Below are positions 7,772-58,642 of a stretch of DNA of 64,000 bases, in pieces (positions within the stretch are counted from its first letter, which is position 1; each line of letters begins with the position of its first letter). Origin of the DNA: Macrostomum lignano. Its lineage: Eukaryota. The stretch is from positions 372,001 through 436,000 of the forward strand of contig NIVC01000305.1 in the NCBI GenBank assembly GCA_002269645.1. The letters are read 5' to 3'. The notes under the pieces were generated by a model, which was not told the origin of the DNA, made no database searches, and saw nothing but the letters and a program-made list of their open reading frames with translations. A program made the position numbers and the translations under genes.

Positions 7772-7827
7772 CCTATCTATCTATCTACCTATCTATCTAT
7801 CTGTCTGTCTATCTATCTATCTGTCTG

Positions 7828-7880
<53 letters not shown>

Positions 7881-16800: not shown

Positions 16801-16937
16801 GACGAATTCTGCATTATATTTTTAATCCTAAAGAAGCTTTAGTTCTTAGAAATGTTATCATTACTCAGTGCCAATATGTAGTTGACCACTGGGCACAGGC
16901 AAAACTTCATGTACCCACATCTGCACCCAACTTTCAG

Positions 16938-32083: not shown

Positions 32084-33385
32084 ATGGCTGTCGAAAGCAT
32101 GAAGCTACTTGCAATATTGCTTCTGTTCTGTTCGATCCTGGCAACGGAAAGCATCGCCAAGCGGAGAGACTATCAAGCCGAGCTGTTCAAATACTTGAAG
32201 AACAACATTACTGACTACAGTCCGAAACTGCGACCTACGCTCGACCTAGACCAGGATGTGGAAGTACACGTCATCGCCTCGCCAAGAATGATTGTATCCG
32301 TGGACAGCGCCAAGCAGAGCATGACAATAGCTGGCATGTTTTTTGCCAGCTGGTACGAGGAGCGACTGGTCTGGGACCCCCAGCTGTTCGGGAATGTCAC
32401 AATGATGGACTGGGACAGCAACCAGCTCTGGCTCCCGGTCATAATCGTCTACAACGGCATGGGAGACAATCAACTGCTCAGTCCTCAGTTTCCGCCGTAC
32501 ATCACTTCCGTGCAGTCCAATTTGTCAGTGGTATCGACAACCTGGAGACAGGAGTGGGAGTTCTCTTGCGAGTTTAATATGACCCGCTTCCCTCTGGACC
32601 GTCACATCTGCGACATGGAGCTGTTCATGAATGCCCGCGCATTGGACAAAATCGTCCCGAGAAAAGGCTTATTATTGGCAAACTCATCGTTTGAATATAA
32701 TGAAGGCGCAGCTTTTGCTCGTAACAGCGAATGGCGGGTGCTGAACCTCAGCACATTCATACGGTACAACGACTTCAAAATGTTCAAAAGTCAGCCGCCA
32801 GTGAAAATGCCGACCTTTGTGATGCGACTGGAGATTGAGCGAGTGTCTACTTACTACATGCTCAACGTGGTGGCTCCCCTAATGCTGCTCACGCTGCTCC
32901 AGGTGCTCGTCTTCTTCGTGCCCGTCGAGTCTGGAGAGAAGCTGGGCTTCGGCATCACCATCACGCTGAGCTACACGGTGTTCCTGCTGCTACTGGACGG
33001 CCTGCTGCCCAAGTCGCAGTCGATGCCGGCCGTGGCGTCGTTCATCACGGCGGCCATGGTGCTGTCGACGTCGTCTCTGCTGCTGACGTCGGTGTCGATT
33101 CGGTTCCACTTCGCTGCGGAGTCTCAGCCGATGCCGTCGTGTCTCCGGTTCATGTTCGTGAGCTGCCTGGGCCGCGCGATGCTGTGCGGTGAGAGGCGAG
33201 GCGGCAGCAGGACGGCGCCGGAGGGAGACGCCGATGACTCCGTGGTGAGCAAGGCGAGCGACGTCGGTGAAAGGCGCTCGGAGTGGCAGGTCGCAGCGGT
33301 CGCCGTGGAGCGGCTGATGATTTTCTTGGGCTGTCCTGCCGCAGTGGCCATTGTGGTTGCATTTGTCATTGTTCCATCCTGTTAA
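32084..33385 (+). CDS. Intronless Cys-loop ligand-gated ion channel, divergent nAChR-like non-alpha subunit; copy 1 (A-type ectodomain, B-type tail)
   Basis: 433-aa single ORF with signal peptide, Cys-loop CEFNMTRFPLDRHIC, M1-M2 PVESGEKLGFGIT, M3 and M4, and a short M3-M4 loop. No vicinal cysteines. Confidence 0.92.
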   Translation: MAVESMKLLAILLLFCSILATESIAKRRDYQAELFKYLKNNITDYSPKLRPTLDLDQDVEVHVIASPRMIVSVDSAKQSMTIAGMFFASWYEERLVWDPQLFGNVTMMDWDSNQLWLPVIIVYNGMGDNQLLSPQFPPYITSVQSNLSVVSTTWRQEWEFSCEFNMTRFPLDRHICDMELFMNARALDKIVPRKGLLLANSSFEYNEGAAFARNSEWRVLNLSTFIRYNDFKMFKSQPPVKMPTFVMRLEIERVSTYYMLNVVAPLMLLTLLQVLVFFVPVESGEKLGFGITITLSYTVFLLLLDGLLPKSQSMPAVASFITAAMVLSTSSLLLTSVSIRFHFAAESQPMPSCLRFMFVSCLGRAMLCGERRGGSRTAPEGDADDSVVSKASDVGERRSEWQVAAVAVERLMIFLGCPAAVAIVVAFVIVPSC

Positions 33386-33944
33386 TTTTAACTCGGCTAG
33401 ACAAAAAATCGAAGCACAGTGATAGAGCGCTCTGTAGTAATATGAACTTATTAAACGTAATTTAAAAAAGCAGTCTCTCTTGTCTAATAGTTATTCTCTT
33501 TTACGTTCTCTAAGAAATGCCTCGCTGCTGAAGCCTTGGGGTCCAAAATTAAAGGTCACATTTGCTTAAACTATTTACACTAATGGGCAATGCTTAAAAT
33601 ACAAAATCCAACTTTAAAATCGAAGTGGTGTCAATCGTTCTAAATACACAAATTTTATTCTTTTTGTGAATCTTTGTGGACTAATTTCTTTCTTAACCTT
33701 TTCTGCAACAAAGGGCATGATACTCCAAAACTGAGTCTATTTTGTACCTTATGTATGGAAAAGCTTTCACACAGAACTTACGGATTCAGAACGGTGAGTT
33801 GTATATAACTGTCACAACTTGAGACATCGCAAAATCTGAAGCGATCGCTGAGTTGACTTCTGCAACTTTAACTTTTCGACTGCACCTTCGACTGCACCCG
33901 CATACTGCCGTCCAGGGCCATGAAAGGCACAGAGTGAGGACCAA

Positions 33945-34200
33945 GGGTTTATTAGGCTGAGGACCATGTGTTCATTGGGCTGAAGACCATGGGTTCATTG
34001 GGCTGAGGACCACGTGTTCATTGGGCTGAAGACCAAGGGTTCATTGGGCTGAAGACTATGGGTTCATTGGGCTGAGGACCACGTGTTCATTGGGCTGAGG
34101 ACCATGGGTACATTGGGCTGAGGACCACGTGTTCATTGGGCTGAAGACCAAGGGTTCACTGGTTTGAGGACCATGACTTCATGAGAACTGAGGACCAATA
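33945..34200. repeat. 23-bp minisatellite downstream of copy 1; homologues at 44728-45010 and 55468-56035
   Basis: Unit TGAGGACCATGGGTTCATTGGGC. The third array is expanded and shifted to GAGACTGAGGACCATGATTTCAT. Confidence 0.9.
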
Positions 34201-34899
34201 ATGTGGTAGCGTGTGGCGTGTGTCTGGGGTGTTTGCATGGTGCTAGTTTGGTTTGGGTGTGTTATCGAATTATCGATTGTTCGTCCGAAGCTTCTAACGT
34301 TTTCGGCTTTGATAAATCTAAAGACAAAATATGTCAATTAATAAACTTTATCTGACATTTTCCAATATGCGAAATTTCCTCCGCTCAATTGGCAGTGAAA
34401 TTTGATAGCGAAGCTGCTATTCTAGTATGATGCTTCGAATTTGGACGAAGCAATTGCTTCTCTTTCGACACCTCGATTTCGCCTCGAATAGTAAATTAAT
34501 TTCACTAAAATATCAAAGCAGTCACGAACCTATAGAGTAAACACCTGAGCCATTTTTACACAGACATGTATAGATGCATGGACACCTGAGGTATAGGCCG
34601 GTGGGATATTTTCGAATCTCTTTTAGGGTTATTATTGTCATCTGGATCGGTATCTGGCAGTCAAGGTCAACTGATTATAGGCTTTTAGCCTGTTAGTCAG
34701 TTCTTCAAAGCCTGTTAGACAGTCTGTAGAGATCTCTAAAACATAGTATAAGCAGACTACTAGAAGTGGAAAGATAAAATATTTGAAAGACAAATTTTAC
34801 ATGCTACGGTTCATACTCAATTTTTAATAGTAATCACGAAAACAGTAAACGTCTATTCCATTATGCGAAAAACCGGTTCTCAACATCTAATTTTAGAAC

Positions 34900-36610
34900 T
34901 TCCTTTGATATCAATTACCGGAGGAGGGGCACAGAGGAAGGCATTCATGCCTTCAAAGGGAGTAGAGGGTGGAGCGCCTATAGTCATGCGTCAGGCTCTG
35001 CCCTGGATTTTGTAGAGATTGCCGAAATTCCAAAATTGCCGAAAGTGGGCTAGATGACCGCTAGCCCACACGAGGCTGGCGTAACAGATTGAGGGGCGGA
35101 TAATGGCAGTGTAAATCCACCACAGTTTTCTGGGGGTGAGCCCTAGGTGGTGCCCACGGCGCACCTGATCTGAGCCAGGACAGCCAGGGCTTTTTTGGCT
35201 TTAGTTTGAATGTGCGGAGTCCAGTTTAAGCCTGTGGTCCAGAGTGAGGCCCAGGCAGCGGACCTGCTTCTCCATGGAAATATCCTTTCCATAGAGGGCG
35301 AGGGGCTTAATGGTCCAGAGCAGTTTGTTGGTAAACATGACCGCTGTGGTTTTCGACTCTGAGAGTCTAAGGCCACATTGGTTTGCCCAACGCTCCGCTC
35401 GTCCCAGAAAGCCCTGCAGAAGATCTCTGAGGTATCAAACGAGGGACCCTCGCATATGGTGGTCACATTATAGGCATAGCCCACCTTGAGAATGGTGTCA
35501 TGGAGATCACTGCAAAGCAACTTATCCATGCGTCCTTTCTGGACAGGCGCCGTTAGAGAGCTGCTGTTCAGGTGGACCACGACAGTGCGGTTCCGGATCA
35601 TGAACATGATCCACCGAACAAGGGGAGGGTGCGTGGCCCTGGATTCCAGGGGTCTGCAAAAGGCCTCGAAGATGACATTGTCGAAGGCCCCCTCAATCTC
35701 CAGGAAAAGCGAGAGGGCAAAGCCGCTGCCAAGAACGGCCCTCTTCAGGAAGTCAACGATGACATTGAGGGCACTCTCAGTGGACCTGCCCGCGCGGAAG
35801 GCGTGCTGGTTATGCGAGAGAGGGAAGCGCTTCAGCTCGATTGAAAGTAAGCGCCAAAGCACCAGTCTTTCGAGGAGCTTAAGGCAGAAGGAGGTAAGGC
35901 TGATAGGCCTGAAGGCCTTCACCTATTGGTAGTCGCAATATCCAGGCTTGGGGATAAAGACCACCCGGGCCTCTTTCCACGCAACTGGTACATAGCCCAG
36001 CTCCACACAAGCTCGGAGGAGACGACAGAGGAGGTCTAGGAAGCGGTGGTTTTTCACTGCCTCGTGCAAGAACGCTTAGTAGATGCCATCGGGCCCAGGC
36101 GCCTTGAACGGGTTGAAGGACCTTGCCGCTCTAGTAATGCGGTCTTTGCTGATCATAGACTTTGCTTGGCCTTGCCCTTCCACGGTGGGGTCAGGCGGGC
36201 CCTGCTGAGTCGGAGATTTAGGGAAGCTCTCTGTGACCGAGCCATCAGGTTTCTTCACAACAGATAGTTTAGAAAAACGGTCGTTCGTGAGTGCCTTTAC
36301 CACGTGGGCTACGGGGCGAGAGCCCTCAAGCCCTTCGCAATATTGGCGCCACTTGGCCCTTCTGACTTGGCCCTTAAACTCGTGGATAGCACGGGTATAG
36401 GCCTCTCTATCAGATGGGTCTTTGGTTTTCAACGCTCGTCTTTGGAGGGTCCTGGCTCGGCGCCGAAGGGCTCTGGGTTTCACCAGGGAGCAGATTTCTT
36501 GCCTTTGAAGGCCTTAAGAGGGCAGGCTGCCTCATAGGCAGTGGTGATCGCCCCGTCCAGGGGGGAGGCGTGATCATCCACAACCCGGCAGTCAGAGAGG
36601 TCACTGGGGA
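34900..36610 (-). mobile_element. Decayed non-LTR retrotransposon RT fragment (LOA/R1-like, inferred)
   Basis: Frameshifted RT-region motifs: FKAPGPDGI, FRPISLTSFCLKLLERL, QHAFRAGRST, LEIEGAFDNV, and [17 protein letters not shown]. Confidence 0.85.
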
Positions 36611-36654
36611 CTGCTAGATCGGAACCCAACCATTCGATGGATGGAGTTGCCCTA

Positions 36655-37850
36655 GCTCCAGAGGCTTATTCTCTGGCGGCTGCTTTCATGCGAGCTGACA
36701 GCAATGCCCCTCAGCAATAATCAGCACGCCTTCCGTACCGAGAGAACGACTGACAGCGCCCTGCATGCGATAGTCGAAAAGATTGAACGGGCGGTACTGG
36801 GTGACGGTTACGCCCTGGCTCTTTTTCTCGACATTGTTGGCGCCTTCGACAACGTTATCTTTAAAGCGTTTCAGAGGGCCCTTCAAAACCGCAAAGCTCA
36901 CGCTACCCTCATACGGTGGATCATGTACATGCTCTCTAACCGTACGGTCACTGCCCAACTTCTCGGGCAAACTGCCTCCACCAGAGTCTGTAAGGGTGGA
37001 CCCCAAGGTGGAGTCCTCAGCCCGACGCTCTGGTATCTGGTCATGGACGCTCTTCTGGGTGACTCCCGACCTGATCCAGTTTTCAAAGTCGGGTATGCTG
37101 ACGACGTATTTGCCATTGTGGCAGGGCCGTCCCCCAGCACGCTCAGGGATCTGATGCAGAGCTTTATCCGCAAAGCAGAATCCTGGGCCAATGACAACGG
37201 TCTGGAACTCTCTGAGCCCAAAACCGTTGCCAATATGTTCACCAGCAGAATACGCTGGAACATACGACCTCTGCAGTTATAAGGCAGAGATATTGCCTTC
37301 GCGCACCAGACCAGATGTCTCGGGATCATAATTGACCACCGGCTCAACTGGTCCTTCCACGTGAAAGCAAAAGCCAAGCGTGCCTCAGCCATCCTGGCCC
37401 AGCTCCGACGAGCACTTGGCACTTCTTGGGGTCTTTCCCCAAAGCGACTTTGGTAGATCTACACTTCCGTAGTTAGACCTGCCATTACGTACGCCTCGGT
37501 TGTCTGGGTTAGCGCTACCCAGGTCAAAAGTCATGCAGATTTGCTCAACACGATCCAGGGCAGAGCGTGTAGGCTTATCTGCAACGCCACCAGGTCCACG
37601 CCCTTTGCCGGCATGGGGGCCTTCCTTAATCTACCGCTTCTCGACCTCTTCGTCAGGGGTGAGGCGGCTAGAACGACGCGGCGTTTACTTGATGCCGGCG
37701 TCAAATTCCTTTGCATGAGGGCACCTGCTAAGCGGAACCTCGTCCCGCATAGCGACCTGTGCCTCAACATTCTTAACGAGTGTCAGGCCAATCGCGTCTT
37801 CACCGATGGCATTGCCTCAACGCTCAACATATTGCTAAAAACTTTGCTTT
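36655..37850 (+). mobile_element. Second non-LTR retrotransposon RT fragment, related but distinct family, head-to-head with the previous one
   Basis: QHAFRTERTT, LDIVGAFDNV, GGPQGGVLSP, GYADD and WGLSPKRLW.IYTSVVRP, with in-frame stops. Confidence 0.88.
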
Positions 37851-38321
37851 CCTGACCCTCAACCGCAGTGGCTGACTCTGGACATATTCGTCACAGCTGG
37901 CTGGTCCCTGCTATCCTGCCTGTCCTTCGTGCCCCTGTTCGCTCACGTGGCCTACTCCAGTCGACTAAAGCGAGGTATACTGGACTTGGACCTGAATCAT
38001 TACGTCACCACGCTGGTGGTAAATCCTAATCTAATAGTTACCATGACAACAGGTGACAAAGCATCCGCCTTTGAGCCAGCTGTGAGGAAACAACGATTTC
38101 AATTTATAAATCTTATAATCGAAAACCGAATTAAATCATATATAAAAGTACGAGTAATCCTTTTCAGTCGTTCTCTACATTTTATCCAATATTAACGCTG
38201 TACATTGGAAACTGCGTTGTGACAGCTAGTCTGGTAAACTCCTTTAATTTATTGGATTTGACTTGTTATACAACAGCTTTTAGCCCTTTAGCTTCACTGA
38301 TTAGCCAGTAGATTCGCTTAA

Positions 38322-38855
38322 CAGTAGGAATGCCACGCCATTTTTCCGCCCGTCGAACTACCAAGGGGAAGGGGATTCCCCCCTAACAAGTGTTTTTGCT
38401 GCGCCCGAACGGAGCAACGCAGGCACACGAAATTCAAGAACACGGGCTAACCTTTGTTATGCAACTTCTCAAACAAGAATCAAGTGGCCAGCCCTCCGGA
38501 CCGTCGAGATATTCGACGATTCTGCCAGAAAGTCGGATTTTAGCCATAAGCGATAGTGTATTCAGTACACCCCTGTACGCCAATTAGCACTGCGCCTTAG
38601 TGCAGCCTTTTCAAGCCTCCAAATTTCATCAGCACGTCGATCACACGCGGCTGCTTCAGCTCTGACTTCTTTAGTCACTGGCCTTCACCCAGGCGGAGCT
38701 TCTGGACCTTCAACAGGTGGCACCAGGTGAGTTTGAGAAGTTGCACAACAAAAAGTTAGCCCGTGCTCTTGAATTTCGTGTGCCTGCGTTGCTCCGTTCG
38801 GGCGCATTAAAGAAATTGTCAGAGGGGGGTAAATTCCCCCTTGGTAGTTCTACTG
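38322..38855. mobile_element. MITE with ~120-bp internal inverted repeats, inserted at a TTAA (or TA) target
   Basis: Ends CAGTAG...CTACTG flanked by TTAA on both sides. Arms 38356-38474 and 38731-38850 are reverse complements. The homologous empty site TTCGCTTAATAGTAG is at ~31135-31149. Confidence 0.88.
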
Positions 38856-39788
38856 TTAATAGTAGCAAGTAGAGTGTAGTCTCATTAAATTTTAATTCAG
38901 TTTTAGCTAAGCAACGACCAAACAATTTTCGCAGAGTACTTCAAGCGAGTTGCCTTGCTGTAAATCTGTTTACAAACCAAATACTTCGTGTTGATCGGCA
39001 AGAAAAATCATCCAATAATCGACGAGATAAACAAAATCAACCTGCTGTCACTGAATAATCGAGGCAAGTCGTTGCTATGGATACAACAGAATGCATCTTA
39101 GGACAGGATGCATATTTAGAACAAATTACTTGAATCGACTTCAAATTTATCACTGCAAAGTAATTTTTTATCAAACTTTGGTAATCACGATTTATAGTAC
39201 CGCATAAATAGCCTACTTGAGTCAACAAATATACTCTGAAGTTTTTAAGCCGTTTATATGCGAGAGGAAACATATTTCGAGGTAAAATAACATAACAGAA
39301 TAAATTACAATGTCATATAGTTAATTACACAACCGACTCTAAAAATGATAGAGCCAAGTCAATTAGACATGAAAGCTCGTTGAAAAATACGCACGAAACT
39401 AATAAAAAGATTATTTACATTAATTAATTTCCAAGGCAAACGCACTGTCAGGACAAATCAACCTACGAGTAATCAAACACAGACGCAAATGATCCATCAA
39501 TTTATGAGTTAGCCAATAGCACTAAATGGGATGGCGATTCAATTATTCAATTATTCAATTATTCAATTATTCAATTATTCAAACGGGTATTTGCTATGCC
39601 CCGATAGCAAATAACCACGATTGCTTCCCATGAACACTGCTTAGTTTGGACTATATGCAATCATAAAACGCATACCGGATGCAATATTGTCTGCTTCTAT
39701 GCATCCATGTAGCATCCAGAGATTACAAATACCGGCATCGAAGCAGTGTATTAGTCGAATTAGAGGCATCTAAGTCGAATCTTTCGCG

Positions 39789-41117
39789 ATGGCTGTCGAA
39801 GGGATGAAGTTGCTTGCAATATTGCTTCTGTTCTGTTCGATCCTGGCAAAGGAATGCCTCGCCAAGCGGAGAGACTATCAAGCCGAGCTGTTCAAATACT
39901 TGAAGAACAACATTACTGACTACAGTCCGAAACTGCGACCTACGCTCGACCCAGACCAGGAGGTAGAAGTACACGTCATCGCCTCACCAGGAATGATTGT
40001 ATCCGTGGACAGTGCCAAGCAGAGCATGACAATAGCTGGTATGTTTTTTGCCAGCTGGTACGAGGAGCGACTGGTCTGGGACCCCCGGCTTTTCGGAAAT
40101 GTCACCGCGATGGACTGGGACGGCAACCAGCTCTGGTTCCCGGTCATATTTGTCTACAACGGCATGGGAGACAATCAACTACTCAGTCCTCAGTTTCCGC
40201 CGTACATCACTTCCGTGCAGTCCAATTTGTCAGTGGTATCGACAACCTGGAGACAGGAGTGGGAGTTCTCTTGCGAGTTTAATATGACCCGCTTCCCTCT
40301 GGACCGTCACATCTGCGACATGGAGCTGTTCATGAATTCCCGCGAATCGGACAAAATTGTCCTAAGAAAAGGCTTATTATTGGCAAACTCATCCTTTGAA
40401 TACAATGAAGGCGTGGCTTTTGCTCGTAACAGCGAATGGCGGGTGCTGAACCTCAGCACATTCATACGGTACAACGACTTCAAAATGTTCAAAAATCTGC
40501 CGCCAGTGAAAATGCCGAACTTCGTGATGCGACTGGAGATTGAGCGGGTGTCCACTTACTACATGCTCAACGTGGTGACTCCCCTAATGCTGCTCACGCT
40601 GCTCCAGGTGCTCGTCTTCTTCGTGCCCGTCGAGTCTGGAGAGAAGCTGGGCTTCGGCATCACCATCATGCTGAGCTACACGGTGTTCCTGCTGCTGCTG
40701 GACGGCCTGCTGCCCAAGTCGCAGTCGATGCCGGCCGTGGCGTCGTTCATCACGGCGGCCATGGTGCTGTCGACGTCGTCTCTGCTGCTGACGTCGGTGT
40801 CGATTCGGTTCCACTTCGCTGCGGAGTCTCAGCCGATGCCGTCGTGTCTCCGGGTCGTGTTCGTGAGCTGCCTGGGCCGCGTGATGCTGTGCGGTGAGCG
40901 GCGAGGCGGCAGCAGGACGGCACCGGAGGGAGACCTCGATGATTCTGCTGTGAACGAACCGAGCCATGACGATAAGAGGACCGGAGAGACGTCCGGAGAG
41001 CCGAGGCGCTCGGAGTGGCAGGTTGCAGAGGTCGCCGTGGAGCGGCTGCTGATCCTCCTAGGCTGTCCGGTCACTTTGGCCATCACGTTTTGTTTCCTTA
41101 TTTTTCCGTTTCTTTGA
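39789..41117 (+). CDS. Intronless Cys-loop ligand-gated ion channel, divergent nAChR-like; copy 2 (A-type)
   Basis: 442-aa ORF with the same architecture as copy 1 but a distinct M3-M4 loop and M4 (DDSAVNEPSHDDKRTGETSGEPRRSEWQVAEVAVERLL). Confidence 0.92.
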   Translation: MAVEGMKLLAILLLFCSILAKECLAKRRDYQAELFKYLKNNITDYSPKLRPTLDPDQEVEVHVIASPGMIVSVDSAKQSMTIAGMFFASWYEERLVWDPRLFGNVTAMDWDGNQLWFPVIFVYNGMGDNQLLSPQFPPYITSVQSNLSVVSTTWRQEWEFSCEFNMTRFPLDRHICDMELFMNSRESDKIVLRKGLLLANSSFEYNEGVAFARNSEWRVLNLSTFIRYNDFKMFKNLPPVKMPNFVMRLEIERVSTYYMLNVVTPLMLLTLLQVLVFFVPVESGEKLGFGITIMLSYTVFLLLLDGLLPKSQSMPAVASFITAAMVLSTSSLLLTSVSIRFHFAAESQPMPSCLRVVFVSCLGRVMLCGERRGGSRTAPEGDLDDSAVNEPSHDDKRTGETSGEPRRSEWQVAEVAVERLLILLGCPVTLAITFCFLIFPFL

Positions 41118-41579
41118 AAAAACATTCGGTGGCACCTTCACGGAGATGGGTTTTCTGATGGGTTAAAAATTCTCGTGTCTGACGAGAGTTTCGATATCTA
41201 AGCACCAAATTAACTTTGAAGATGATACGAAAACATTTTAATAGTGTAATAAAGTCGGTTACTAATATATAGTTGCACTGAGTGAGGTGAAGAGTAAGTA
41301 TCACGCTTAAACGTCATTAGTAATTTTTTCGGCGAACTGAATGTATAGATGTATACGGACACTGTACTAAAAAATTATGATTACTCTTTTCTAGGTCAAG
41401 TTTTTCTTTGGTAAGACCCTCTTGGCACAGCGCAAAAAGCTTAAAAAGATCAGAATAAACAACTTTTCTATGCATTGCCGCTATCCAATAAGATTCTTTT
41501 AAGTTTTCGATTAAAGCTTGTCAAAAAATGCATGCTGCTTCAGGTGTTATTTATAATATAAAATAGTACAATCATATAA

Positions 41580-41870
41580 TGATAGATAACACCTGCCCTA
41601 ATGGGCAGATTTGCAACCGACAGCTCAGCCGCAGCTATTGCGTGTCGCATCTGAAGGCTGCGTACGGCTGTTCAGTCCGAGGACTGGGGGGGGGGTTCAT
41701 ACACACCCTCAATTACCCCCAGCTAATGCTGATACAAATTTTACAGCTGGGTGAACCGAAGCATGTCAGTGTCTTGCTCGAGGACACAAATTGTTCCAAG
41801 AGGGTCGATAATCGAACCCCCGACCTTTCAGTCGTGAGTCCGACGCTCTCACCACTAGGCTAGATTTAAC
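41580..41870 (-). mobile_element. tRNA-derived SINE with a Nin/Deu-like central domain
   Basis: Minus strand has A-box TAGCCTAGTGG and B-box GGTTCGATT, followed by TGTGTCCTCGAGCAAGACACT and CACCCAGCTGTAAAATTTGTA. Confidence 0.6.
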
Positions 41871-42872
41871 TACATCCAATAATAAGATAGTTCAGATGAC
41901 GCAAGTGCAGGAAGGTTCCATGGGAATCGGCCAGAATTGCAAGTCTGAAAACGGCGCAGTATTATTTGATGCAAACATTTTGAAGGGACTGCGTGCGGAA
42001 AACTTATTATAAATCACGCATGGGTTTTATCATATATTATTTACCTTTTCATCCATATGATTTTTAACTAAATAACGCGTGTTAATGTGTCGGCTGCTTC
42101 TTGTGTGTCGAAGGAATTGAAGAAAAATGTGTCCACATTATGCTTTAAGCGACAAACCTCACATGTGAAAAATACTTGCTTGCTGTTATTCATTCTAAGT
42201 TACGCGTGCTAAAGCGCGTCTGCTGCCCCGTGAGGATCAAGGGGAAAACTGAGCACTACCGTGACTTATTGATATGTAATGTTTTAGGGTCTTTGACCTT
42301 AACTATGTATATAAGCTAGGACACAATGGATCAATGGTACAAGCTAAAATTAAATTGGGCATTAGTTATTATTATACGCTATCGTATCTCAGATGAATCA
42401 CATGTAAGTTCTTAGTTTGCGGCCGATTAGAAACTTATAGCTACATTTAGTCATTCTACATTAGATGTCCACACGCTCCTCGAGCGAGCTTTATCCAGAG
42501 GCAAAGATCAGCAGAGGAGCTGCGTAGAATCCGCAAATATCAGTCATACCTGGCAAAGTCAATTTAGAAAATGAATCGCAAATAATACTAATTTGCTGAT
42601 GAGACGAAGGTCACACAATGAGATATACCTGGTTCAGTCCTGCATCAGATTAATTACGGGATACTCAGTGACTGCAATTCACAGATGCTCGTAGCAACTA
42701 AATAGGCAGACTATGCAAACTTCAGAATTTGATAGCCTACTGCAGTGTCAACATGTAAAACGCATTTACGCTTGTATAGCTTAAAGGCTCGGGTTCAACA
42801 GGATCTGGGGATTTTATTGTCCAAGCTTAGCACGCTGCTCATCATTGAGACGGCTAACTCAACTACATCCAC

Positions 42873-44179
42873 GTGCCACAGTTCAGCCTTACCCGCTTCT
42901 GTTTGGTCTTCAGCGCCATCGCTAGTGTTCAGGTGGCTCAGCTAGAGACTTTGAAGCGGAATTGCTCGATTACTTGAAGACTAACAACTCTCGGTATAGC
43001 CGTACGCTCAGGCCGAAACTAGATCCACATCAGGTGATTGAAGTGTCGCTCGGTGCTTGTCTGCTGAAAATTCTGGACGTAGACAGCGCCAAGCAGAGCG
43101 TCACCATAGCCGCAACGATCTACGCGATGTGGTTTGATGAACGCCTCGTCTGGGACCCGACCCAGTTTGGGAACATCACAATATTGGAATGGGACAACCA
43201 GAAAATCTGGTTTCCTCCAATCGTTATTCTGAATGGTCTCGGCGACAATCAGCTGCTGAAGCCGGAGTTTCCATCATTTTTGGCCTCGATGTCATCGAAC
43301 AAGACATTGGTGTCGACTATTTGGCGACGAGGTTTCGAGTTCACCTGCCAATTAAGCATGTACCGATTTCCAATGGATCGACACGTATGCAGTTTTAGCC
43401 TGCAAAAGGAGGACCAGGCTCAGCTATACAAAAGTATAGTTCCAAGCAAGAAATTTTTGTGGAATGCGGAGAATGAGCAAGATGTGGAGTTAAATGAACT
43501 CGGTGCGCATAAAAACAGCAGCGAGTGGCGACTGCTAAGTTTGAGTACTTCGGTAGAATATGGACTTGTCAACTTTTTTAAGAATTCACCACTGATGCTA
43601 ATACCAGCCTACAATATGCAAATGGAAATCGAGCGGGAGTCCACTTACTACATGCTCAACGTGGTGACTCCACTACTGCTGCTCACGCTGCTCCAGGTGC
43701 TCGTCTTCTTCGTGCCAGTCGAGTCTGGAGAGAAGCTTGGCTTCGGCATCACCATCATGCTGAGCTACACGGTGTTCCTGCTGCTGCTGGACGGCCTGCT
43801 GCCCAAGTCGCAGTCGATGCCGGCCGTGGCGTCGTTCATCACGGCGGCCATGGTGCTGTCGACGTCGTCTCTGCTGCTGACGTCGGTAGCGATTCGGTTC
43901 CACTTCGCTGCGGAGTCTCAGCCGATGCCGTTGTGTCTCTGGGTCGTGTTCGTGAGCTGCCTGGGCCGCGTGATGCTGTGCGGTGAGCGGCGAGGCGGCA
44001 GCAGGACGGCGCCGGAGGGAGACGCCGATGACTCCGTGGTGAGCAAGGCGAGCGACGTCGGTGAAAGGCGCTCGGAGTGGCAGGTCGCAGCGGTCGCCGT
44101 GGAGCGGCTGATGATTTTCTTGGGCTGTCCTGCCGCAGTGGCCATTGTGGTTGCATTTTTCATTGTTCCATTCTGTTAA
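42873..44179 (+). pseudogene. Intronless Cys-loop channel copy 3 (B-type); start codon lost and signal peptide frameshifted
   Basis: Compared with intact copy 5, ATG reads GTG at 42873, and GCTCAGGCTAGA reads GCTCAGCTAGA (1-bp deletion near 42940). The rest (42962-44179) is open, with Cys-loop CQLSMYRFPMDRHVC. Confidence 0.8.
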
Positions 44180-47445: not shown

Positions 47446-47492
47446 AGACTGCTAGATCGGAACCCAACCATTCGATGGATGGAGTTGCCCTA

Positions 47493-48688
47493 GCTCCAGA
47501 GGCTTATTCTCTGGCGGCTGCTTTCATGCGAGCTGACAGCAATGCCCCTCAGCAATAATCAGCACGCCTTCCGTACCGAGAGAACGACTGACAGCGCCCT
47601 GCATGCGATAGTCGAAAAGATTGAACGGGCGGTACTGGGTGACGGTTACGCCCTGGCTCTTTTTCTCGACATTGTTGGCGCCTTCGACAACGTTATCTTT
47701 GAAGCGTTTCAGAGGGCCCTTCAAAACCACAAAGCCCACGCTACCCTCATACGGTGGATCATGTACATGATCTCTAACCGTACGGTCACTGCCCAACTTC
47801 TCGGGCAAACTGCCTCCGCCAGAGTCTGTAAGGGTGGACCCCAAGGCGGAGTCCTCACCCCGATGCTCTGGAATCTGTTCATGGACGCTCTTCTGTGTGA
47901 CTCCCGACCTGATCCTGTTTTCAAAGTCGGGTATGCTGACGACGTCACTGCCATTGTGGCAGGGCAGTCCCCCAGCACGCTCAGGGATCTGATGCAGAGC
48001 TTTATCCGCAAAGCAGAATCCTGGGCCAATGACAACGGTCTGGAACTCTCTGAGACCAAAACCGTTGCCATTATGTTCACCAGCAGAATACGCTGAAACA
48101 TACGACCTCTGCAGTTATAAGGCAGAGATATTGCCTTCGCGCACCAGACCAGATGTCTCGGGGTCATAATTGACCACCGGCTCAACTGGTCCTTTCACGT
48201 GAAAGCAAAAGCCAAGCGTGCCTCAGCCATCCTGGCCCAGCTCCGACGAGCACTTGGCACCTCTTGGGGTCTATCCCCAAAGCGACTTTGGTGGATCTAC
48301 ACTTCCGTAGTTAGACCTGCCATTACGTACGCCTCGGTTGTCTGGGTTAGCGCTACCCAGGTCAAAAGTCATGCAGATTTGCTCAACGCGATCCAGGGCA
48401 GAGCGTGTAGGCTTATCTGCAACGCCACCAGGTCCACGCCCTTTGCTGGCATGGGGGCCTTCCTTAATCTACCGCCTCTCGACCTCTTCGTCAGGGGTGA
48501 GGCGGCTAGAACGACGCGGCGTTTACTTGATGCCGGCGTCAAATTCCTTTGCATGAGGGCACCTGCTAAGCGGAACCTCGTCCCGCATAGCGACCTGTGC
48601 CTCAACATTCTTAACGAGTGTCAGGCCAATCGCGTCTTCACCGATGGCATTGCCTCAACGCTCAACATATTGCTAAAAACTTTGCTTT
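47493..48688 (+). mobile_element. Duplicate of the plus-strand LINE RT fragment
   Basis: Near-identical to 36655-37850; GGPQGGVLTPMLWNLFMD and GYADD. Confidence 0.88.
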
Positions 48689-49159
48689 CCTGACCCTCAA
48701 CCGCAGTGGCTGACTCTGGACATATTCGTCACAGCTGGCTGGTCCCTGCTATCCTGCCTGTCCTTCGTGCCCCTGTTCGCTCACGTGGCCTACTCCAGTC
48801 GACTAAAGCGAGGTATACTAGACTTGGACCTGAATCATTACGTCACCACGCTGGTGGTAAATCCTAATCTAATAGTTACCATGACAACAGGTGACAAAGC
48901 ATCCGCCTTTGAGCCAGCTGTGAGGAAACAACGATTTCAATTTATAAATCTTATAATCGAAAACCGAATTAAATCATATATAAAAGTACGAGTAATCCTT
49001 TTCAGTCGTTCTCTACATTTTATCCAATATTAACGCTGTACATTAGAAACTGCGTTGTGACAGCTAGTCTGGTAAACTCCTTTAATTTATTGGATTTGAC
49101 TTGTTATACAACAGCTTTTAGCCCTTTAGCTTCACTGATTAGCCAGTAGATTCGCTTAA

Positions 49160-49694
49160 CAGTAGGAATGCCACGCCATTTTTCCGCCCGTCGAACTACC
49201 AAGGGGAAGGGGATTCCCCCCTAACAAGTGTTTTTGCTGCGCCCGAACGGAGCAACGCAGGCACACGAAATTCAAGAACACGGGCTAACCTTTGTTATGC
49301 AACTTCTCAAACAAGAATCAAGTGGCCAGCCCTCCGGACCGTCGAGATATTCGACGATTCTGCCAGAAAGTCGGATTTTAGCCATAAGCGATAGTGTATT
49401 CAGTACACCCCTGTACGCCAATTAGCACTGCGCCTTAGTGCAGCCTTTTCAAGCCTCCAAATTTCATCAGCACGTCGATCACACGCGGCTGCTTCAGCTC
49501 TGACTTCTTTAGTCACTGGCCTTCACCCAGGCGGAGCTTCTGGACCTTCAACAGGTGGCACCAGGTGAGTTTGAGAAGTTGCACAACAAAAAGTTAGCCC
49601 GTGCTCTTGAATTTCGTGTGCCTGCGTTGCTCCGTTCGGGCGCATTAAAGAAATTGTCAGAGGGGGGGTAAATTCCCCCTTGGTAGTTCTACTG
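49160..49694. mobile_element. Second copy of the same MITE, carried by segmental duplication
   Basis: Same ends, TTAA flanks and context as 38322-38855. Confidence 0.88.
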
Positions 49695-50618
49695 TTAATA
49701 GTAGCAAGTAGAGTGTAGTCTCATTAAATTTTAATTCAGTTTTAGCTAAGCAACGACCAAACAATTTTCGCAGAGTACTTCAAGCGAGTTGCCTTGCTGT
49801 AAATCTGTTTACAAACCAAATACTTCGTGTTGATCGGCAAGAAAAATCATCCAATAATCGACGAGATAAACAAAATCAACCTGCTGTCACTGAATAATCG
49901 AGGCAAGTCGTTGCTATGGATACAACAGAATGCATCTTAGGACAGGATGCATATTTAGAACAAATTACTTGAATCGACTTCAAATTTATCACTGCAAAGT
50001 AATTTTTATCAAACTTTGGTAATCACGATTTATAGTACCGCATAAATAGCCTACTTGAGTCAACAAATATACTCTGAAGTTTTTAAGCCGTTTATATGCG
50101 AGAGGAAACATATTTCGAGGTAAAATAACATAACAGAATAAATTACAATGTCATATAGTTAATTACACAACCGACTCTAAAAATGATAGAGCCAAGTCAA
50201 TTAGACATGAAAGCTCGTTGAAAAATACGCACGAAACTAATAAAAAGATTATTTACATTAATTAATTTCCAAGGCAAACGCACTGTCAGGACAAATCAAC
50301 CTACGAGTAATCAAACACAGACGCAAATGATCCATCAATTTATGAGTTAGCCAATAGCACTAAATGGGATGGCGATTCAATTATTCAATTATTCAATTAT
50401 TCAATTATTCAAACGGGTATTTGCTATGCCCCGATAGCAAATAACCACGATTGCTTCCCATGAACACTGCTTAGTTTGGACTATATGCAATCATAAAACG
50501 CATACCGGATGCAATATTGTCTGCTTCTATGCATCCATGTAGCATCCAGAGATTACAAATACCGGCATCGCAGCAGTGTATTAGTCGAATTAGAGGCATC
50601 TAAGTGGAATCTTTCGCG

Positions 50619-51946
50619 ATGGCTGTCGAAGGGATGAAGTTGCTTGCAATATTGCTTCTGTTCTGTTCGATCCTGGCAACGGAAAGCATCGCCAAGCGGA
50701 GAGACTATCAAGCCGAGCTGTTCAAATACTTGAAGAACAACATTACTGACTACAGTCCAAAACTGCGACCTACGCTCGACCCAGACCAGGATGTGGAAGT
50801 ACACGTCATCGCCTCGCCAAGAATGATTGTATCCGTGGACAGTGCCAAGCAGAGCATGACAATAGCTGGCATGTTTTTTGCCAGCTGGTACGAGGAGCGA
50901 CTGGTCTGGGACCCCCGGCTTTTCGGAAATGTCACCGCGATGGACTGGGACGGCAACCAGCTCTGGTTCCCGGTCATATTTGTCTACAACGGCATGGGAG
51001 ACAATCAACTACTCAGTCCTCAGTTTCCGCCGTACATCACTTCCGTGCAGTCCAATTTGTCAGTGGTATCGACAACCTGGAGACAGGAGTGGGAGTTCTC
51101 TTGCGAGTTTAATATGACCCGCTTCCCTCTGGACCGTCACATCTGCGACATGGAGCTGTTCATGAATTCCCGCGAATCGGACAAAATTGTCCTAAGAAAA
51201 GGCTTATTATTGGCAAACTCATCCTTTGAATACAATGAAGGCGTGGCTTTTGCTCGTAACAGCGAATGGCGGGTGCTGAACCTCAGCACATTCATACGGT
51301 ACAACGACTTCAAAATGTTCAAAAATCTGCCGCCAGTGAAAATGCCGAACTTCGTGATGCGACTGGAGATTGAGCGAGTGTCCACTTACTACATGCTCAA
51401 CGTGGTGACTCCCCTAATGCTGCTCACGCTGCTCAGGTGCTCGTCTTCTTCGTGCCCGTCGAGTCTGGAGAGAAGCTGGGCTTCGGCATCACCATCATGC
51501 TGAGCTACACGGTGTTCCTGCTGCTGCTGGACGGCCTGCTGCCCAAGTCGCAGTCGATGCCGGCCGTGGCGTCGTTCATCACGGCGGCCATGGTGCTGTC
51601 GACGTCGTCTCTGCTGCTGACGTCGGTGTCGATTCGGTTCCACTTCGCTGCGGAGTCTCAGCCGATGCCGTCGTGTCTCCGGGTCGTGTTCGTGAGCTGC
51701 CTGGGCCGCGTGATGCTGTGCGGTGAGCGGCGAGGCGGCAGCAGGACGGCACCGGAGGGAGACCTCGATGATTCTGCTGTGAACAAACCGAGCCGTGACG
51801 ATGTGAGGACCGGAGAGACGTCCGGAGAGCCGAGGCGCTCGGAGTGGCAGGTTGCAGAGGTCGCCGTGGAGCGGCTGCTGATCCTCCTAGGCTGTCCGGT
51901 CACTTTGGCCATCACGTTTTGTTTCCTTATTTTTCCGTTTCTTTGA
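50619..51946 (+). pseudogene. Intronless Cys-loop channel copy 4 (A-type) with a 1-bp deletion in M1
   Basis: CTGCTCCAGGTG in the other copies reads CTGCTCAGGTG at ~51434, splitting the ORF (50619-51503 and 51437-51946). This may be a homopolymer sequencing error. Confidence 0.75.
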
Positions 51947-52409
51947 AAAAACATTCGGTGGCACCTTCACGGAGATGGGTTTTCTGATGGGTTAAAAATT
52001 CTCGTGTCTGACGAGAGTTTCGATATCTAAGCACCAAATTAACTTTGAAGATGATACGAAAACATTTTAATAGTGTAATAAAGTCGGTTACTAATATATA
52101 GTTGCACTGAGTGAGGTGAAGAGTAAGTATCACGCTTAAACGTCATTAGTAATTTTTTCGGCGAACTGAATGTATAGATGTATACGGACACTGTACTAAA
52201 AAATTATGATTACTCTTTTCTAGGTCAAGTTTTTCTTTGGTAAGACCCTCTTGGCACAGCGCAAAAAGCTTAAAAAGATCAGAATAAACAACTTTTCTAT
52301 GCATTGCCGCTATCCAATAAGATTCTTTTAAAGTTTTTGATTGAAGATTGTCAAAAAACGCATGCTTGCTTCAGGTGTTATTTATAATATAAAATAGTAC
52401 AATCATATA

Positions 52410-52702
52410 ATGATAGATAACACCTGTCCTAATGAAGCAGATTTGCAACCGACAGCTCAGCCGCAGCTATTGCGTGTCGCATCTGAAGGCTGCGTACGGC
52501 TGTTCAGTCCGAGGACTGGGGGGGGGGGTTCATACACACCCTCAATTACCCCCAGCTAATGCTGGTACAAATTTTACAGCTGGGTGAACCGAAGCGTGTC
52601 AGTGTCTTGCTCGAGGACACAAATTGTTCCAAGAGGGTCGAGAATCGAACCCCCGACCTTTCAGTCGTGAGTCCGACGCTCTGACCACTAGGCTAGATTT
52701 AA
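52410..52702 (-). mobile_element. Duplicate of the tRNA-derived SINE
   Basis: TAGCCTAGTGGTCAGAGCG...GGTTCGATTCTCG on the minus strand, in the same context as 41580-41870. Confidence 0.6.
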
Positions 52703-53602
52703 CTACATCCAATAATAAGATAGTTGAGATGACGCAAGTGCAGGAAGGTTCCATGGGAATCGGCCAGAATTGCAAGTCTGAAAACGGCGCAGTATTATTT
52801 GATGCAAACATTTTGAAGGGACTGCGTGCGGAAAACTTATTATAAATCACGCATGGGTTTCATCATATATTCTTTACCTTTTCATCCATATACATGTGAA
52901 AAATACTTGCTTGCTGTTATTCATTCTAAGTTACGCGTCCTAAAGCGCGTCTGCTGCCCCTTGAGGATCAAGGGGAAAACTGAGCACTACCGTGACTTAT
53001 TGATATGTAATGTTTTAGGGTCTTTGACCTTAACTATGTATATAAGCTAGGACACAATGGATCAATGGTACAAGCTAAAATTAAATTGGGCATTAGTTAT
53101 TATTATACGCTATCGTATCTCAGATGAATCACATGTAAGTTCTTAGTTTGCGGCCGATTAGAAACTTATAGCTGCATTTAGTCATTCTACATTAGATGTC
53201 CACACGCTCCTCGAGCGAGCTTTATCCAGAGGCAAATATCAGCAGAGGAGCTGCGTAGAATCCGCAAATATCAGTCATACCTGGCAAAGTCAATTTAGAA
53301 AATGAATCGCAAATAATACTAATTTTCTGATGAGACGAAAGTCACACAATGAGATATACCTGGCTCAGTGCTGCATCAGATTAATTACGGATACTCAGTG
53401 ACTGCAATTCACAGATGCTCGTAGCAACTAAATAGGCAGACTATGCAAACTTCAGAATTTGATAGCCTACTGCAGTGTCAACATGTAAAACGCATTTACG
53501 CTTGTATAGCTTAAAGGCTCGGGTTCAACAGGATCTTGGGATTTTATTGTCCAAGCTTAGCACGCTGCTCATCATTGAGACGGCTAACTCAACTACATCC
53601 AC

Positions 53603-54910
53603 ATGCCACAGTTTAGCCTTACCCGCTTCTGTTTGGTCTTCAGCGCCATCGCTAGTGTTCAGGCGGCTCAGGCTAGAGACTTTGAAGCGGATTTGCTCGA
53701 TTACTTGAAGACTAACAACTCTCGGTATAGCCGTACGCTCAGGCCGAAACTAGATCCACATCAGGTGATTGAAGTGTCGCTCGGTGCTTGTCTGCTGAAA
53801 ATTCTGGACGTAGACAGCGCCAAGCAGAGCGTCACCATAGCCGCAATGGTCTACGCGATGTGGTTTGATGAACGCCTCGTCTGGGACCCGACCCAGTTTG
53901 GGAACATCACAATATTGGAATGGGACAACCAGCAAATCTGGTTTCCTCCAATCGTTATTCTGAATGGTCTCGGCGACAATCAGCTGCTGAAGCCGGAGTT
54001 TCCATCATTTTTGGCCTCGATGTCATCGAAAAAGACATTGGTGTCGACTATTTGGCGACGAGATTTCGAGTTCACCTGCCAATTAAGCATGTACCGATTT
54101 CCAATGGATCGACACGTATGCAATTTTAGTTTGTATATGGAGGACCAGGCTCAGCTATACAAAAGTATCGTTCCAAGCAAGAAATTTTTGTGGAATGCGG
54201 AGAATGAGCAAGATGTGGAGTTAAATGAAATTGGTGCGTATAAAAACAGCAGCGAGTGGCGACTGCTAAGTTTGAGTACTTCGGTAGAATATGGACTTGT
54301 CAACTTTTTTAAGAATTCACCACTGATGCTAATACCAGCCTACAATATGCAAATGGAAATCGAGCGGGAGTCCACTTACTACATGCTCAACGTGGTGACT
54401 CCACTACTGCTGCTCACGCTGCTCCAGGTGCTCGTCTTCTTCGTGCCAGTCGAGTCTGGAGAGAAGCTTGGCTTCGGCATCACCATCATGCTGAGCTACA
54501 CGGTGTTCCTGCTGCTGCTGGACGGCCTGCTGCCCAAGTCGCAGTCGATGCCGGCCGTGGCGTCGTTCATCACGGCGGCCATGGTGCTGTCGACGTCGTC
54601 TCTGCTGCTGACGTCGGTAGCGATTCGGTTCCACTTCGCTGCGGAGTCTCAGCCGATGCCGTTGTGTCTCTGGGTCGTGTTCGTGAGCTGCCTGGGCCGC
54701 GTGATGCTGTGCGGTGAGCGGCGAGGCGGCAGCAGGACGGCGCCGGAGGGAGACGCCGATGACTCCGTGGTGAGCAAGGCGAGCGACGTCGGTGAAAGGC
54801 GCTCGGAGTGGCAGGTCGCAGCGGTCGCCGTGGAGCGGCTGATGATTTTCTTGGGCTGTTCTGCCGCAGTGGCCACTGTGGCTGCATTTGTCATTGTTCC
54901 ATTCTGTTAA
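53603..54910 (+). CDS. Intronless Cys-loop ligand-gated ion channel, divergent nAChR-like; copy 5 (B-type, intact)
   Basis: 435-aa ORF with signal peptide, Cys-loop CQLSMYRFPMDRHVC, GEK motif and four TM segments. Confidence 0.92.
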   Translation: MPQFSLTRFCLVFSAIASVQAAQARDFEADLLDYLKTNNSRYSRTLRPKLDPHQVIEVSLGACLLKILDVDSAKQSVTIAAMVYAMWFDERLVWDPTQFGNITILEWDNQQIWFPPIVILNGLGDNQLLKPEFPSFLASMSSKKTLVSTIWRRDFEFTCQLSMYRFPMDRHVCNFSLYMEDQAQLYKSIVPSKKFLWNAENEQDVELNEIGAYKNSSEWRLLSLSTSVEYGLVNFFKNSPLMLIPAYNMQMEIERESTYYMLNVVTPLLLLTLLQVLVFFVPVESGEKLGFGITIMLSYTVFLLLLDGLLPKSQSMPAVASFITAAMVLSTSSLLLTSVAIRFHFAAESQPMPLCLWVVFVSCLGRVMLCGERRGGSRTAPEGDADDSVVSKASDVGERRSEWQVAAVAVERLMIFLGCSAAVATVAAFVIVPFC

Positions 54911-57322: not shown

Positions 57323-58642
57323 ATGCTGTGTAAAATATTCATTAAAGCTCTTGCTCTTGTCGCCTTGCTGACCACTGAATATCAGTTAGCAGCAGGTGCT
57401 GAAGACTACGAGGCCGAACTGTTGCACTACTTAAGGCACAACATCACCGGCTACAGCCCGACTCTCCGACCATTGCTGAATTCAAAGCAGACTGTCTTTG
57501 TGTCAGCAGACATTATAATTGGTCAGATAATCTCGGTTGACAGCTCAAAGCAAAGTGTAACAATTTCCGCAATTATCTCAGCCAGCTGGAGCAACGAGCG
57601 GTTAATCTGGGACCCGGCCAAGTTCGGCAACATCACCGTGATGGACTGGGACAGCAGTCAGCTCTGGTTCCCTGTTGTGGTCGTCTACAACGGCCTTGGA
57701 GACAACCAGCTGCTGAGTCCTCAGCTTCCGACATTCATCACGTCAGTGTCGCCCAACAGATCTACAGTGTCCACCGGCTGGATCGGGCAGTGGGAGTTCT
57801 CCTGCAAGTTTAACATGAATCGGTTTCCGTTCGATCGGCACTCCTGCGAGATGGAGCTGTTTGCGAATGACCAGAGCCGCGGGTTGCCCAGCACTGTTAT
57901 AAAGAAAGGGGTCATTTCTACTGATGCGCCATCGGAGCCAACGGAGTACAACAATAAGGGTGCCTATAGGACCAATGGCGAATGGAACTTGGTCAACTTG
58001 ACCACTTATATAAAGAAAATACCCTATGAGGTGCTTAAGGGAGCATCAAAGGTTAATCTGTCTACGTTGGCTTTGCACATGGAGCTCGAGCGAGTGCCCA
58101 CTTACTACATTTTGAGCGTAATGACCCCCCTGCTGCTGCTCACGCTGCTCCAGGTGCTCGTCTTCTTCGTTCCCGTTGAGTCTGGAGAGAAGCTGGGCTT
58201 CGGCATCACAATCATGCTGAGCTACACGGTGTTTCTGCTGCTGCTGGACGGCCTGCTGCCCAAGTCGCAGTCGATGCCGGCCGTGGCGTCGTTCATCACG
58301 GCGGCCATGGTGCTGTCGACGTCGTCTCTGCTGCTGACGTCGGTGTCGATTCGGTTCCACTTCGCTGCGGAGTCTCAGCCGATGCCGTCGTGTCTTCGGT
58401 TCGTGTTCGTGAGCTGCCTGGGCCGCGCGATGCTGTGCGGTGAGAGGCGAGGCGGCGGCAGGACGGCGCCTGAGGAAGACGCCGACGACGCTGTGGTGAG
58501 AAAGGCGGGCGACGACGGCGAGAAGCGCTCGGACTGGAAAGCAGCTTCAACCGCCGTGGAGCGGTGCATGATTGTCGTAGGCTTGCCAATCACCGCAGCG
58601 CTTTTGATCGCTTTGGTCGCGGTTCCTTTTGCTGAATTTTGA
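57323..58642 (+). CDS. Intronless Cys-loop ligand-gated ion channel, divergent nAChR-like; copy 6 (C-type, intact)
   Basis: 439-aa ORF with signal peptide, Cys-loop CKFNMNRFPFDRHSC, GEK motif and four TM segments. Confidence 0.92.
   Translation: MLCKIFIKALALVALLTTEYQLAAGAEDYEAELLHYLRHNITGYSPTLRPLLNSKQTVFVSADIIIGQIISVDSSKQSVTISAIISASWSNERLIWDPAKFGNITVMDWDSSQLWFPVVVVYNGLGDNQLLSPQLPTFITSVSPNRSTVSTGWIGQWEFSCKFNMNRFPFDRHSCEMELFANDQSRGLPSTVIKKGVISTDAPSEPTEYNNKGAYRTNGEWNLVNLTTYIKKIPYEVLKGASKVNLSTLALHMELERVPTYYILSVMTPLLLLTLLQVLVFFVPVESGEKLGFGITIMLSYTVFLLLLDGLLPKSQSMPAVASFITAAMVLSTSSLLLTSVSIRFHFAAESQPMPSCLRFVFVSCLGRAMLCGERRGGGRTAPEEDADDAVVRKAGDDGEKRSDWKAASTAVERCMIVVGLPITAALLIALVAVPFAEF

Follow-up and report, generated by a model that had tools for sequence, protein, structure and literature searches.

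Several described systems come close to the locus reported here. The variable exons of the clustered protocadherins of fugu, zebrafish and human have undergone repeated regional gene conversion, with raised GC content at third codon positions (GC3) in the homogenised part (PMC1852091); regional conversion in protocadherins is credited to Noonan et al. 2004, as cited in PMC1852091. For TLR1 and TLR6, conversion limits the divergence of the C-terminal part (the last leucine-rich repeats, the transmembrane (TM) segment and the TIR domain) but not that of the ligand-binding N-terminus (Kruithof et al. 2007, PMC2077338), a pattern that the authors explain by shared partners (PMC2077338). Molluscs and other lophotrochozoans carry intronless, tandem genes resembling those of nicotinic acetylcholine receptors (nAChRs), which cluster by species and for which retroposition followed by tandem duplication has been proposed (Jiao et al. 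2019, PMC6896357). Cephalopod chemotactile receptors are homo- and heteropentamers of subunits from an expanded nAChR-derived set, with diversifying ligand pockets (PMC11526382). Here we analyse a stretch of 64,000 nt from the flatworm Macrostomum lignano (GenBank assembly GCA_002269645.1, contig NIVC01000305.1, positions 372,001 to 436,000 of the forward strand), referred to as the window, which contains a tandem array of nAChR-like genes with strongly diverged ectodomains and a near-identical pore-coding block. Very probably, this block has been kept alike by ectopic (interlocus) gene conversion together with unequal recombination, confined to the block.

The array occupies 32–59 kb of the window on the + strand and consists of six continuous, intronless open reading frames (ORFs) of 433–442 codons arranged in tandem.

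32084..33385, + strand: G1, intact and intronless, 433 aa (ORF; Pfam ligand-binding and TM domains)
39789..41117, + strand: G2, intact type-A subunit gene, 442 aa (ORF, Pfam, alignment)
42873..44179, + strand: G3, type-B copy with a broken frame, recombinant (alignment)
50619..51946, + strand: G4, type-A copy with a 1-nt deletion (ORF, alignment)
53603..54910, + strand: G5, intact type-B subunit gene, 435 aa (ORF, Pfam)
57323..58642, + strand: G6, intact type-C subunit gene, 439 aa (ORF, Pfam, solved relatives)

By ectodomain, the genes are of three types, A (G1, G2 and G4), B (G3 and G5) and C (G6). G1/G2/G4 and G3/G5 are recent duplicates, and the independent ectodomain lineages number three, not six. 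Two of the six copies, G3 and G4, look like pseudogenes. In G3 the initial ATG reads GTG (42873) and a 1-nt deletion lies near 42942 in the signal peptide; this copy is probably a pseudogene, and its ectodomain compared with that of G5 gives a ratio of nonsynonymous to synonymous divergence (dN/dS) of ~0.8. In G4 a 1-nt deletion at 51433 (CC to C) within the first TM segment, M1, shifts the frame, which marks either a pseudogene or an assembly indel.

All four proteins tested against Pfam (G1, G2, G5 and G6) match Neur_chan_LBD followed by Neur_chan_memb, both above the gathering cut-off, and among solved proteins they come closest to nAChR beta, alpha and delta subunits, alpha7 and 5-HT3A (E-values 1e-40 to 1e-29). 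The signature Cys-loop is present in the alignment, reading C-EFNMTRFPLDRHI-C in type A, with 13 residues between the cysteines and FPxD, and has its equivalents in types B and C. All six copies align with a cation-type M2, SGEKLGFGITIMLSYTVFLLL, with Gly-Glu-Lys at the intracellular mouth and Leu at 9', and the M2 string SGEKLGFGITIMLSYTVF seen in the aligned array sequences is likewise of the cation type; M2 positions follow the established nAChR/5-HT3 numbering and were assigned from sequence, not from structure. The M3-M4 loop of the array proteins is very short. In the alignment, none of the three loop-C types has the adjacent Cys-Cys pair of alpha subunits, so the array would encode non-alpha, orphan-type subunits; the three loop-C strings quoted in an earlier, model-made reading of this DNA (the initial annotation) are indeed found in G1 (A), G3/G5 (B) and G6 (C). 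We therefore class the array genes, by prediction, as nAChR-like cation-type Cys-loop subunits of the non-alpha or orphan type. Their nearest relatives among ~1.8 billion representative proteins are M. lignano proteins; a word-indexed protein search returned two matches only, at 45–46% identity, and an exhaustive profile search yielded no relative closer than the M. lignano proteins.

The homogenised block comprises 131 codons (393 nt), from the Arg of ERxxTYY to ...RTAPEGD, and takes in the pre-M1 Arg, M1-M3 and ~40 post-M3 codons, thereby reaching beyond M3 into the first part of the M3-M4 loop.

32837..33229, + strand: block in G1 (breakpoint scan, codon display, site patterns)
40542..40934, + strand: block in G2 (breakpoint scan, codon display, site patterns)
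43631..44023, + strand: block in G3, 100% identical to the G5 block and inside a 548-nt identical run
51372..51763, + strand: block in G4, including the 1-nt deletion (breakpoint scan)
54362..54754, + strand: block in G5 (breakpoint scan, codon display)
58088..58480, + strand: block in G6, with its tight part from ~58136 (codon column 274)

Divergence was estimated by the Nei-Gojobori method on a codon alignment built on the protein alignment. Between types, the ectodomains are saturated at synonymous sites (proportion of synonymous differences, pS, 0.73–0.84) and reach a dN of 0.39–0.53, and the loop and M4 tail differ between tail types by a dS of about 0.6–0.75. The block, at dS 0.04–0.17 and dN 0.02–0.04, lies ~20-fold or more below its flanks in dS, and its pairwise divergence grades from 0 to 0.17. 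Only 36 of its 393 sites vary, and a stretch of 101 nt is identical in all six copies. Base composition changes with the block as well: GC3 is 0.85–0.89 inside it, against 0.54–0.67 in the ectodomain and 0.65–0.69 in the tail, with intergenic DNA at 37–42% GC, and the switch falls at the 'ER' codons of ERxxTYY.

These values uphold most of what the initial annotation had read from the letters, namely M1-M3 DNA that is near-identical down to its synonymous sites (the blocks lie within a few bases of the coordinates it gave), very different A, B and C ectodomains, and a GC-richer block with an abrupt switch at ERxxTYY. The comparison of dS by region that it had proposed as a check gives distinctly dissimilar values for the block and the saturated ectodomain. 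Its picture of six paralogues sharing an 'almost identical' ~400 bp stands as far as the block itself is concerned and needs amending elsewhere, since identity is 93–100%, the ectodomain lineages are three, the block of type C starts later and the segment extends past M3.

The edges of the block were located by a two-breakpoint likelihood scan run without prior information. Between types A and B, the scan returned codon columns 258–388, with mismatches at 10 of 393 sites inside and 378 of 897 outside (Fisher p = 1e-58); between A and C it returned columns 274–383 (p = 2e-47), the tight block of type C beginning ~16 codons later, near 58136. Across scans, mismatch was 2.5–3% inside and 40–42% outside (p = 1e-46 to 1e-58). 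In a codon-by-codon display, identity switches from ~50% to nearly 100% within two codons. Searches by tblastn and self-BLAST found exactly six block copies, all of them in genes, and no further or dispersed ones. Private variants persist within the block, comprising 8 B-specific sites common to G3 and G5 and 17 G6-specific sites.

Such variants and edges bear on the possibility that the likeness of the six copies is an artefact of assembly or polishing, put into the consensus by collapsed repeats or by cross-mapping of reads. Repeats with an identity of 95% or more are easily over-polished, and two of the copies have 1-nt deletions in dinucleotide runs that may be consensus errors. Even so, type-specific variants survive within the block, the edges fall at the same codon in independent copies with reading frames continuing across them, and cross-mapping, which needs prior high identity, cannot build the block from sequence ~40% diverged. 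The same pattern is, moreover, found in an unrelated assembly from another phylum (the bivalve Mactra antiquata, discussed below), and we consider an artefact highly improbable.

A control for constraint on the protein is provided by a second M. lignano locus, L002 (NIVC01000059.1), which holds three intact intronless tandem paralogues, labelled M1, M2 and M3 as genes at that locus.

7863-9188: L002 gene M1
10001-11305: L002 gene M2
12783-14105: L002 gene M3

One of these three intact genes has been called; the ORFs at 7863-9188 and 12783-14105, together with a TM fragment at ~16392-16526, are unannotated. Divergence among the L002 ectodomains is similar to that among A, B and C. Over the transmembrane M1-M3 the paralogues have a dS of 0.95–1.4, and a 40-codon core (QVLV...KSQ) is 97–100% identical in amino acids yet has a dS of 0.31–0.76. 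Because the pore core is conserved here in protein without synonymous identity, protein-level constraint does not explain the block; the contention of the initial annotation that such constraint alone is insufficient is thus borne out by a dS of 0.3–1.4 at the same protein core. The 41 post-M3 codons are 42–50% identical in amino acids and 51–63% in nucleotides among the L002 paralogues, against 93–98% nucleotide identity among the window copies, and since the block spans both strongly and weakly constrained sequence, protein selection is not the explanation. Block residues common to all paralogues read FFVPVESG and DGLLP in the window and YF(V/L)PLESG and DGILP in L002. When the two loci are compared, block and ectodomain both cluster by source, in a comparison set too distant to serve as an outgroup. 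GC3 in the L002 equivalents, which are not homogenised, is 0.55, 0.63 and 0.78.

The same control speaks to selection on the nucleotides themselves, in which codon usage, co-translational membrane insertion, mRNA structure or an antisense product would fix the synonymous sites. The strong GC3 bias of the block is in keeping with such selection, as are the long antisense ORFs that lie over it (40584-40967, 54404-54940 and 58046-58360). Nevertheless, M. lignano paralogues with nearly the same pore core differ at dS 0.3–1.4, the block runs into a weakly conserved loop, and the antisense ORF is of low complexity, rich in Arg, Gln and His, belongs to no Pfam family and is expected by chance opposite GC3-rich codons. 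No Rfam match occurs in 30000-60000, and a scan for an overlapping functional element found no tRNAs. Nor would selection of this kind generate the mosaic patterns, the chimera or the junction described next, and we regard it as extremely unlikely.

Variable sites within the block give contradictory groupings. Three that lie close together unite {G1,G6}, another separates {G1,G2,G4} from {G3,G5,G6} and a further one unites {G1,G4,G6}; these patterns violate the four-gamete rule, and no single tree fits them. G1 is a chimera of a type-A ectodomain and a type-B tail, its ectodomain being 95–96% identical to those of G2/G4 and its loop and M4 97.5–98.7% identical to those of G3/G5 and only 72% to those of G2/G4. 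Segment trees clash, placing G1 with G2/G4 by ectodomain and with G3/G5 by tail. The tail chimera of G1 and G3 is also detected by a Sawyer/GENECONV-style permutation of polymorphic sites (p <= 1e-4). G3 is recombinant too, G5-like in its ectodomain and block and G1-like in its tail and downstream sequence, and a three-way comparison of G1, G3 and G5 sets the junction at the 3' edge of the block.

43989..44128, + strand: recombination junction in G3

Upstream of the junction, G3 equals G5 and is unlike G1 at 18 consecutive informative sites (43636-43988); from 44129 on, G3 equals G1 and is unlike G5 at nearly all sites. Within this G1-like tail, a four-site patch at 44172-44195 of the window, where G3 equals G5, may be a small extra conversion tract.

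Copies of the same type share long identical runs: one of 548 nt across the block between G3 and G5, whose ectodomains differ by 2.5%, and one of 408 nt between G2 and G4. The excess of identity is centred on the block; ectodomain dS is 0.03 for both G2-G4 and G3-G5. Two tandem duplication units begin close to the block edges.

32822..43615, + strand: tandem duplication unit 1, ~10.8 kb (block and B tail, minisatellite, reverse-transcriptase (RT) fragments, A gene, B ectodomain)
43616..54346, + strand: tandem duplication unit 2 (self-BLAST)

In the self-BLAST, 32822-42058 matches 43616-52891 at 97.7%, after which 42161-45010 matches 52892-55754 at 92%. The location of the unit edges at the block fits what unequal crossing-over between the blocks of different genes would be expected to produce, and the junction in G3 agrees with this duplication.

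Unequal recombination at the block thus did occur (G1 chimera, junction at 43989-44128, 10.8-kb duplication), and the A-B block dS of 0.04 is close to the ectodomain dS of 0.03 between recent duplicates. Both observations would suit a history of a few one-off domain swaps, in which recent unequal crossovers or duplications joined three old ectodomains to a single pore module; the likeness would then be due to the young age of those events, and the difference from repeated conversion would be one of tempo only. We judge this history improbable, because the block is bounded on both sides, whereas single crossovers carry everything downstream with them and cannot yield such a pattern. Block divergence also falls into several grades, from 0 to 0.17, the incompatible site patterns need several separate events, and same-type copies likewise have excess identity runs centred on the block. 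Taken together, two-sided edges, graded divergence and mosaic sites call for no fewer than four or five events.

A second case was found in the bivalve Mactra antiquata, where a fused gene model (P0004, locus L001, CM103827.1) joins two tandem, intron-bearing nAChR-like genes. Over 62 codons of M1-M2 (12040-12225 versus 33307-33492) the pair has four synonymous differences (98% DNA identity), and this block, which opens with QRKYSYY in Mactra, starts at the same pre-M1 position as the block of the window. Within the same exon, identity is 57% over the 17 codons directly upstream. The remaining gene parts have no comparable DNA similarity, with weak matches of ~70% (for instance in the M3 exon) and repeats. 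The profile search brought up further fused tandem gene models; those inspected were similar throughout or diverged throughout, and a restricted block was found in the Mactra pair only. In the expanded nAChR-like genes of spiralians, restricted homogenisation of the pore segment may thus be a recurring feature.

What best accounts for the synonymous contrast, the sharp edges on both sides, the mosaic patterns, the junction and the negative control is conversion and unequal recombination within the block, and the recurrent gene conversion put forward by the initial annotation is backed, as to mechanism, by these observations and by the G1 chimera. On this account, the A, B and C ectodomain lineages would be old, and a pore segment of ~390 bp would have been overwritten repeatedly between paralogues, with occasional unequal crossing-over in the block alongside conversion. 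Since diverged sequence lies on both sides of the block, the homogenising events would have been patch-type (non-crossover) conversions or double crossovers rather than simple 3'-end swaps, and crossovers in the block or at its edge would have given rise to the chimeric G1 and to the 10.8-kb duplication yielding G2/G4 and G3/G5. Conversion tracts would be confined if only the block retains identity sufficient for homology-dependent repair, with mismatch rejection, selection for distinct binding sites or both barring them from the ectodomain, and each conversion would renew the identity that permits the next. GC-biased repair of heteroduplex DNA may have raised GC3; for the protocadherins of fugu, GC-biased conversion has been argued (PMC1852091). 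The suggestion of the initial annotation that conversion was possibly GC-biased holds in that GC3 is raised in the block and not consistently so in L002; the bias is plausible and consistent with these values, not demonstrated by them, the substitutions being unpolarised.

Several points weigh against this account or narrow it. In a tally of variable sites, the minority alleles of the block run mostly from G/C to A/T, approximately as base composition alone predicts, and the homogenised Mactra block is AT-rich (GC3 0.26). The ectodomains group by locus too, with an amino acid identity of 0.42–0.52 within the window against 0.33–0.40 between the window and L002. The Sawyer-type run test has low power for the block, where polymorphic sites are depleted in all copies at once, and the spatial heterogeneity of mismatches was therefore used instead. 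'Recurrent' stands for approximately four to five inferable events and not for a measured rate, and the data represent a single genome and a single haplotype, as an assembly consensus only.

The initial annotation had also given the homogenisation a purpose, the compatibility of subunits in co-assembly. A passive account fits equally well, in which conversion lasts where identity is high and is blocked or purged in the ectodomain. That homogenisation is selectively maintained, so that spiralian nAChR-derived receptors form arrays with a 'common pore, interchangeable sensor', strikes us as doubtful. Under such selection, conversion would keep the M1-M3 interfaces and gating identical so that any of the diversifying subunits could co-assemble, and the window array and the Mactra pair, with their common pre-M1 boundary, would have arrived at this design convergently.

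Repeats and mobile-element remnants accompany the genes of the array.

35143..37422, unstranded: degenerate non-LTR reverse-transcriptase fragments between G1 and G2 (Pfam RVT_1, ORFs)

A second copy of the RT fragments lies at ~46085-48185; the fragments are in opposite orientations and were duplicated with the 10.8-kb unit. A minisatellite with a period of ~23 bp follows every B-type tail (33931-34197, 44723-45012 and 55472-56082) and is expanded ~twofold after G5. Upstream of both G2 and G4 there is an insertion of ~500 bp with 123-nt inverted repeats that are 85% complementary, resembling a miniature inverted-repeat transposable element (arms at 38352-38474 / 38731-38853 and 49190-49312 / 49569-49692); it is absent at the homologous position upstream of G1.

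Elsewhere in the window, exons resembling a high-affinity choline transporter (SLC5A7/CHT1-like; 25226-26740, + strand; best matches 56–61% identical) lie ~5 kb upstream of the array, so that a cholinergic-pathway gene adjoins the nAChR-like genes. Exon-like ORFs at 16638-17201 and 18731-19249 (+ strand) match the FAD-dependent oxidoreductase (DAO) family and probably belong to one intron-containing gene. An ORF fragment at 2933-3343 (- strand) shows DNMT3-like motifs (LFDG..., GGSPC) and has a Pfam match to the C-5 cytosine DNA methylase family. Many flatworms are not known to have C-5 cytosine methylases, and this ORF would be notable in a flatworm. Long minisatellite and satellite arrays are unusually abundant in the window, and many of them make long spurious ORFs. 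They lie at 2571-2904 versus 22833-23030, 3962 to ~6400, 7463-9227, 19623-20427, 21659-22514, 59636-61614 and 62793-63324, and include a 16-bp array with ~150 registers and an array pair in inverted orientation 20 kb apart.

Within an ion-channel family, the array is a quantitatively clear example of concerted evolution restricted to one domain. Where pore segments are homogenised, full-length or TM-weighted trees of invertebrate nAChR-like genes overstate lineage-specific expansion; segmental homogenisation, as in the window and in Mactra, could inflate apparent species-specific clustering, and trees of the ectodomain only would be safer for expanded invertebrate nAChR-like genes. It is also on the block that unequal recombination acts in enlarging and reshuffling the array, with a chimeric gene and a 10.8-kb duplication as products. 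By setting three such dissimilar sensor domains on one pore, finally, the array amounts to a natural experiment in co-assembly and in the coupling of the ligand-binding domain to the pore.

In comparison with the systems introduced at the outset, the array is most like the clustered protocadherins in being made of tandem receptor paralogues that have diverged in their 5' recognition part and are highly similar, synonymous sites included, in their 3' part. The protocadherins are, in contrast, another protein family, in which the homogenised part is the membrane-proximal ectodomain, the TM segment and a cytoplasmic stub; they also share constant exons by splicing, whereas the array genes are intronless, each with its own block and with diverged flanks on both sides. 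An organisation of variable exons with shared constant exons (protocadherin, UGT1, Ig-like) was not found in the array, whose members are continuous ORFs with their own blocks, and the 'constant region plus variable regions' of the initial annotation survives as an analogy only, there being no shared exon. TLR1 and TLR6 resemble the array as tandem paralogues with a converted TM part and a diverging binding part; unlike it, they are two genes, and in nine species, independently, the paralogues are more similar to each other than orthologues are. The lophotrochozoan expansions have in common with the array that they are intronless nAChR-family genes in tandem, but gene conversion is unmentioned in Jiao et al. 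2019, and the array comes from another lineage, its nearest matches being from a macrostomid flatworm. The cephalopod chemotactile receptors resemble the array as an expanded nAChR-like set with diverse ligand-binding parts; a conversion-kept pore block was not described for those receptors in the literature searched. Full-text literature on gene conversion together with Cys-loop, ligand-gated ion channel, nicotinic or chemotactile receptors likewise held no description of the pattern. Domain-restricted conversion between tandem receptor paralogues is already established, and the array would extend it to an ion-channel family.

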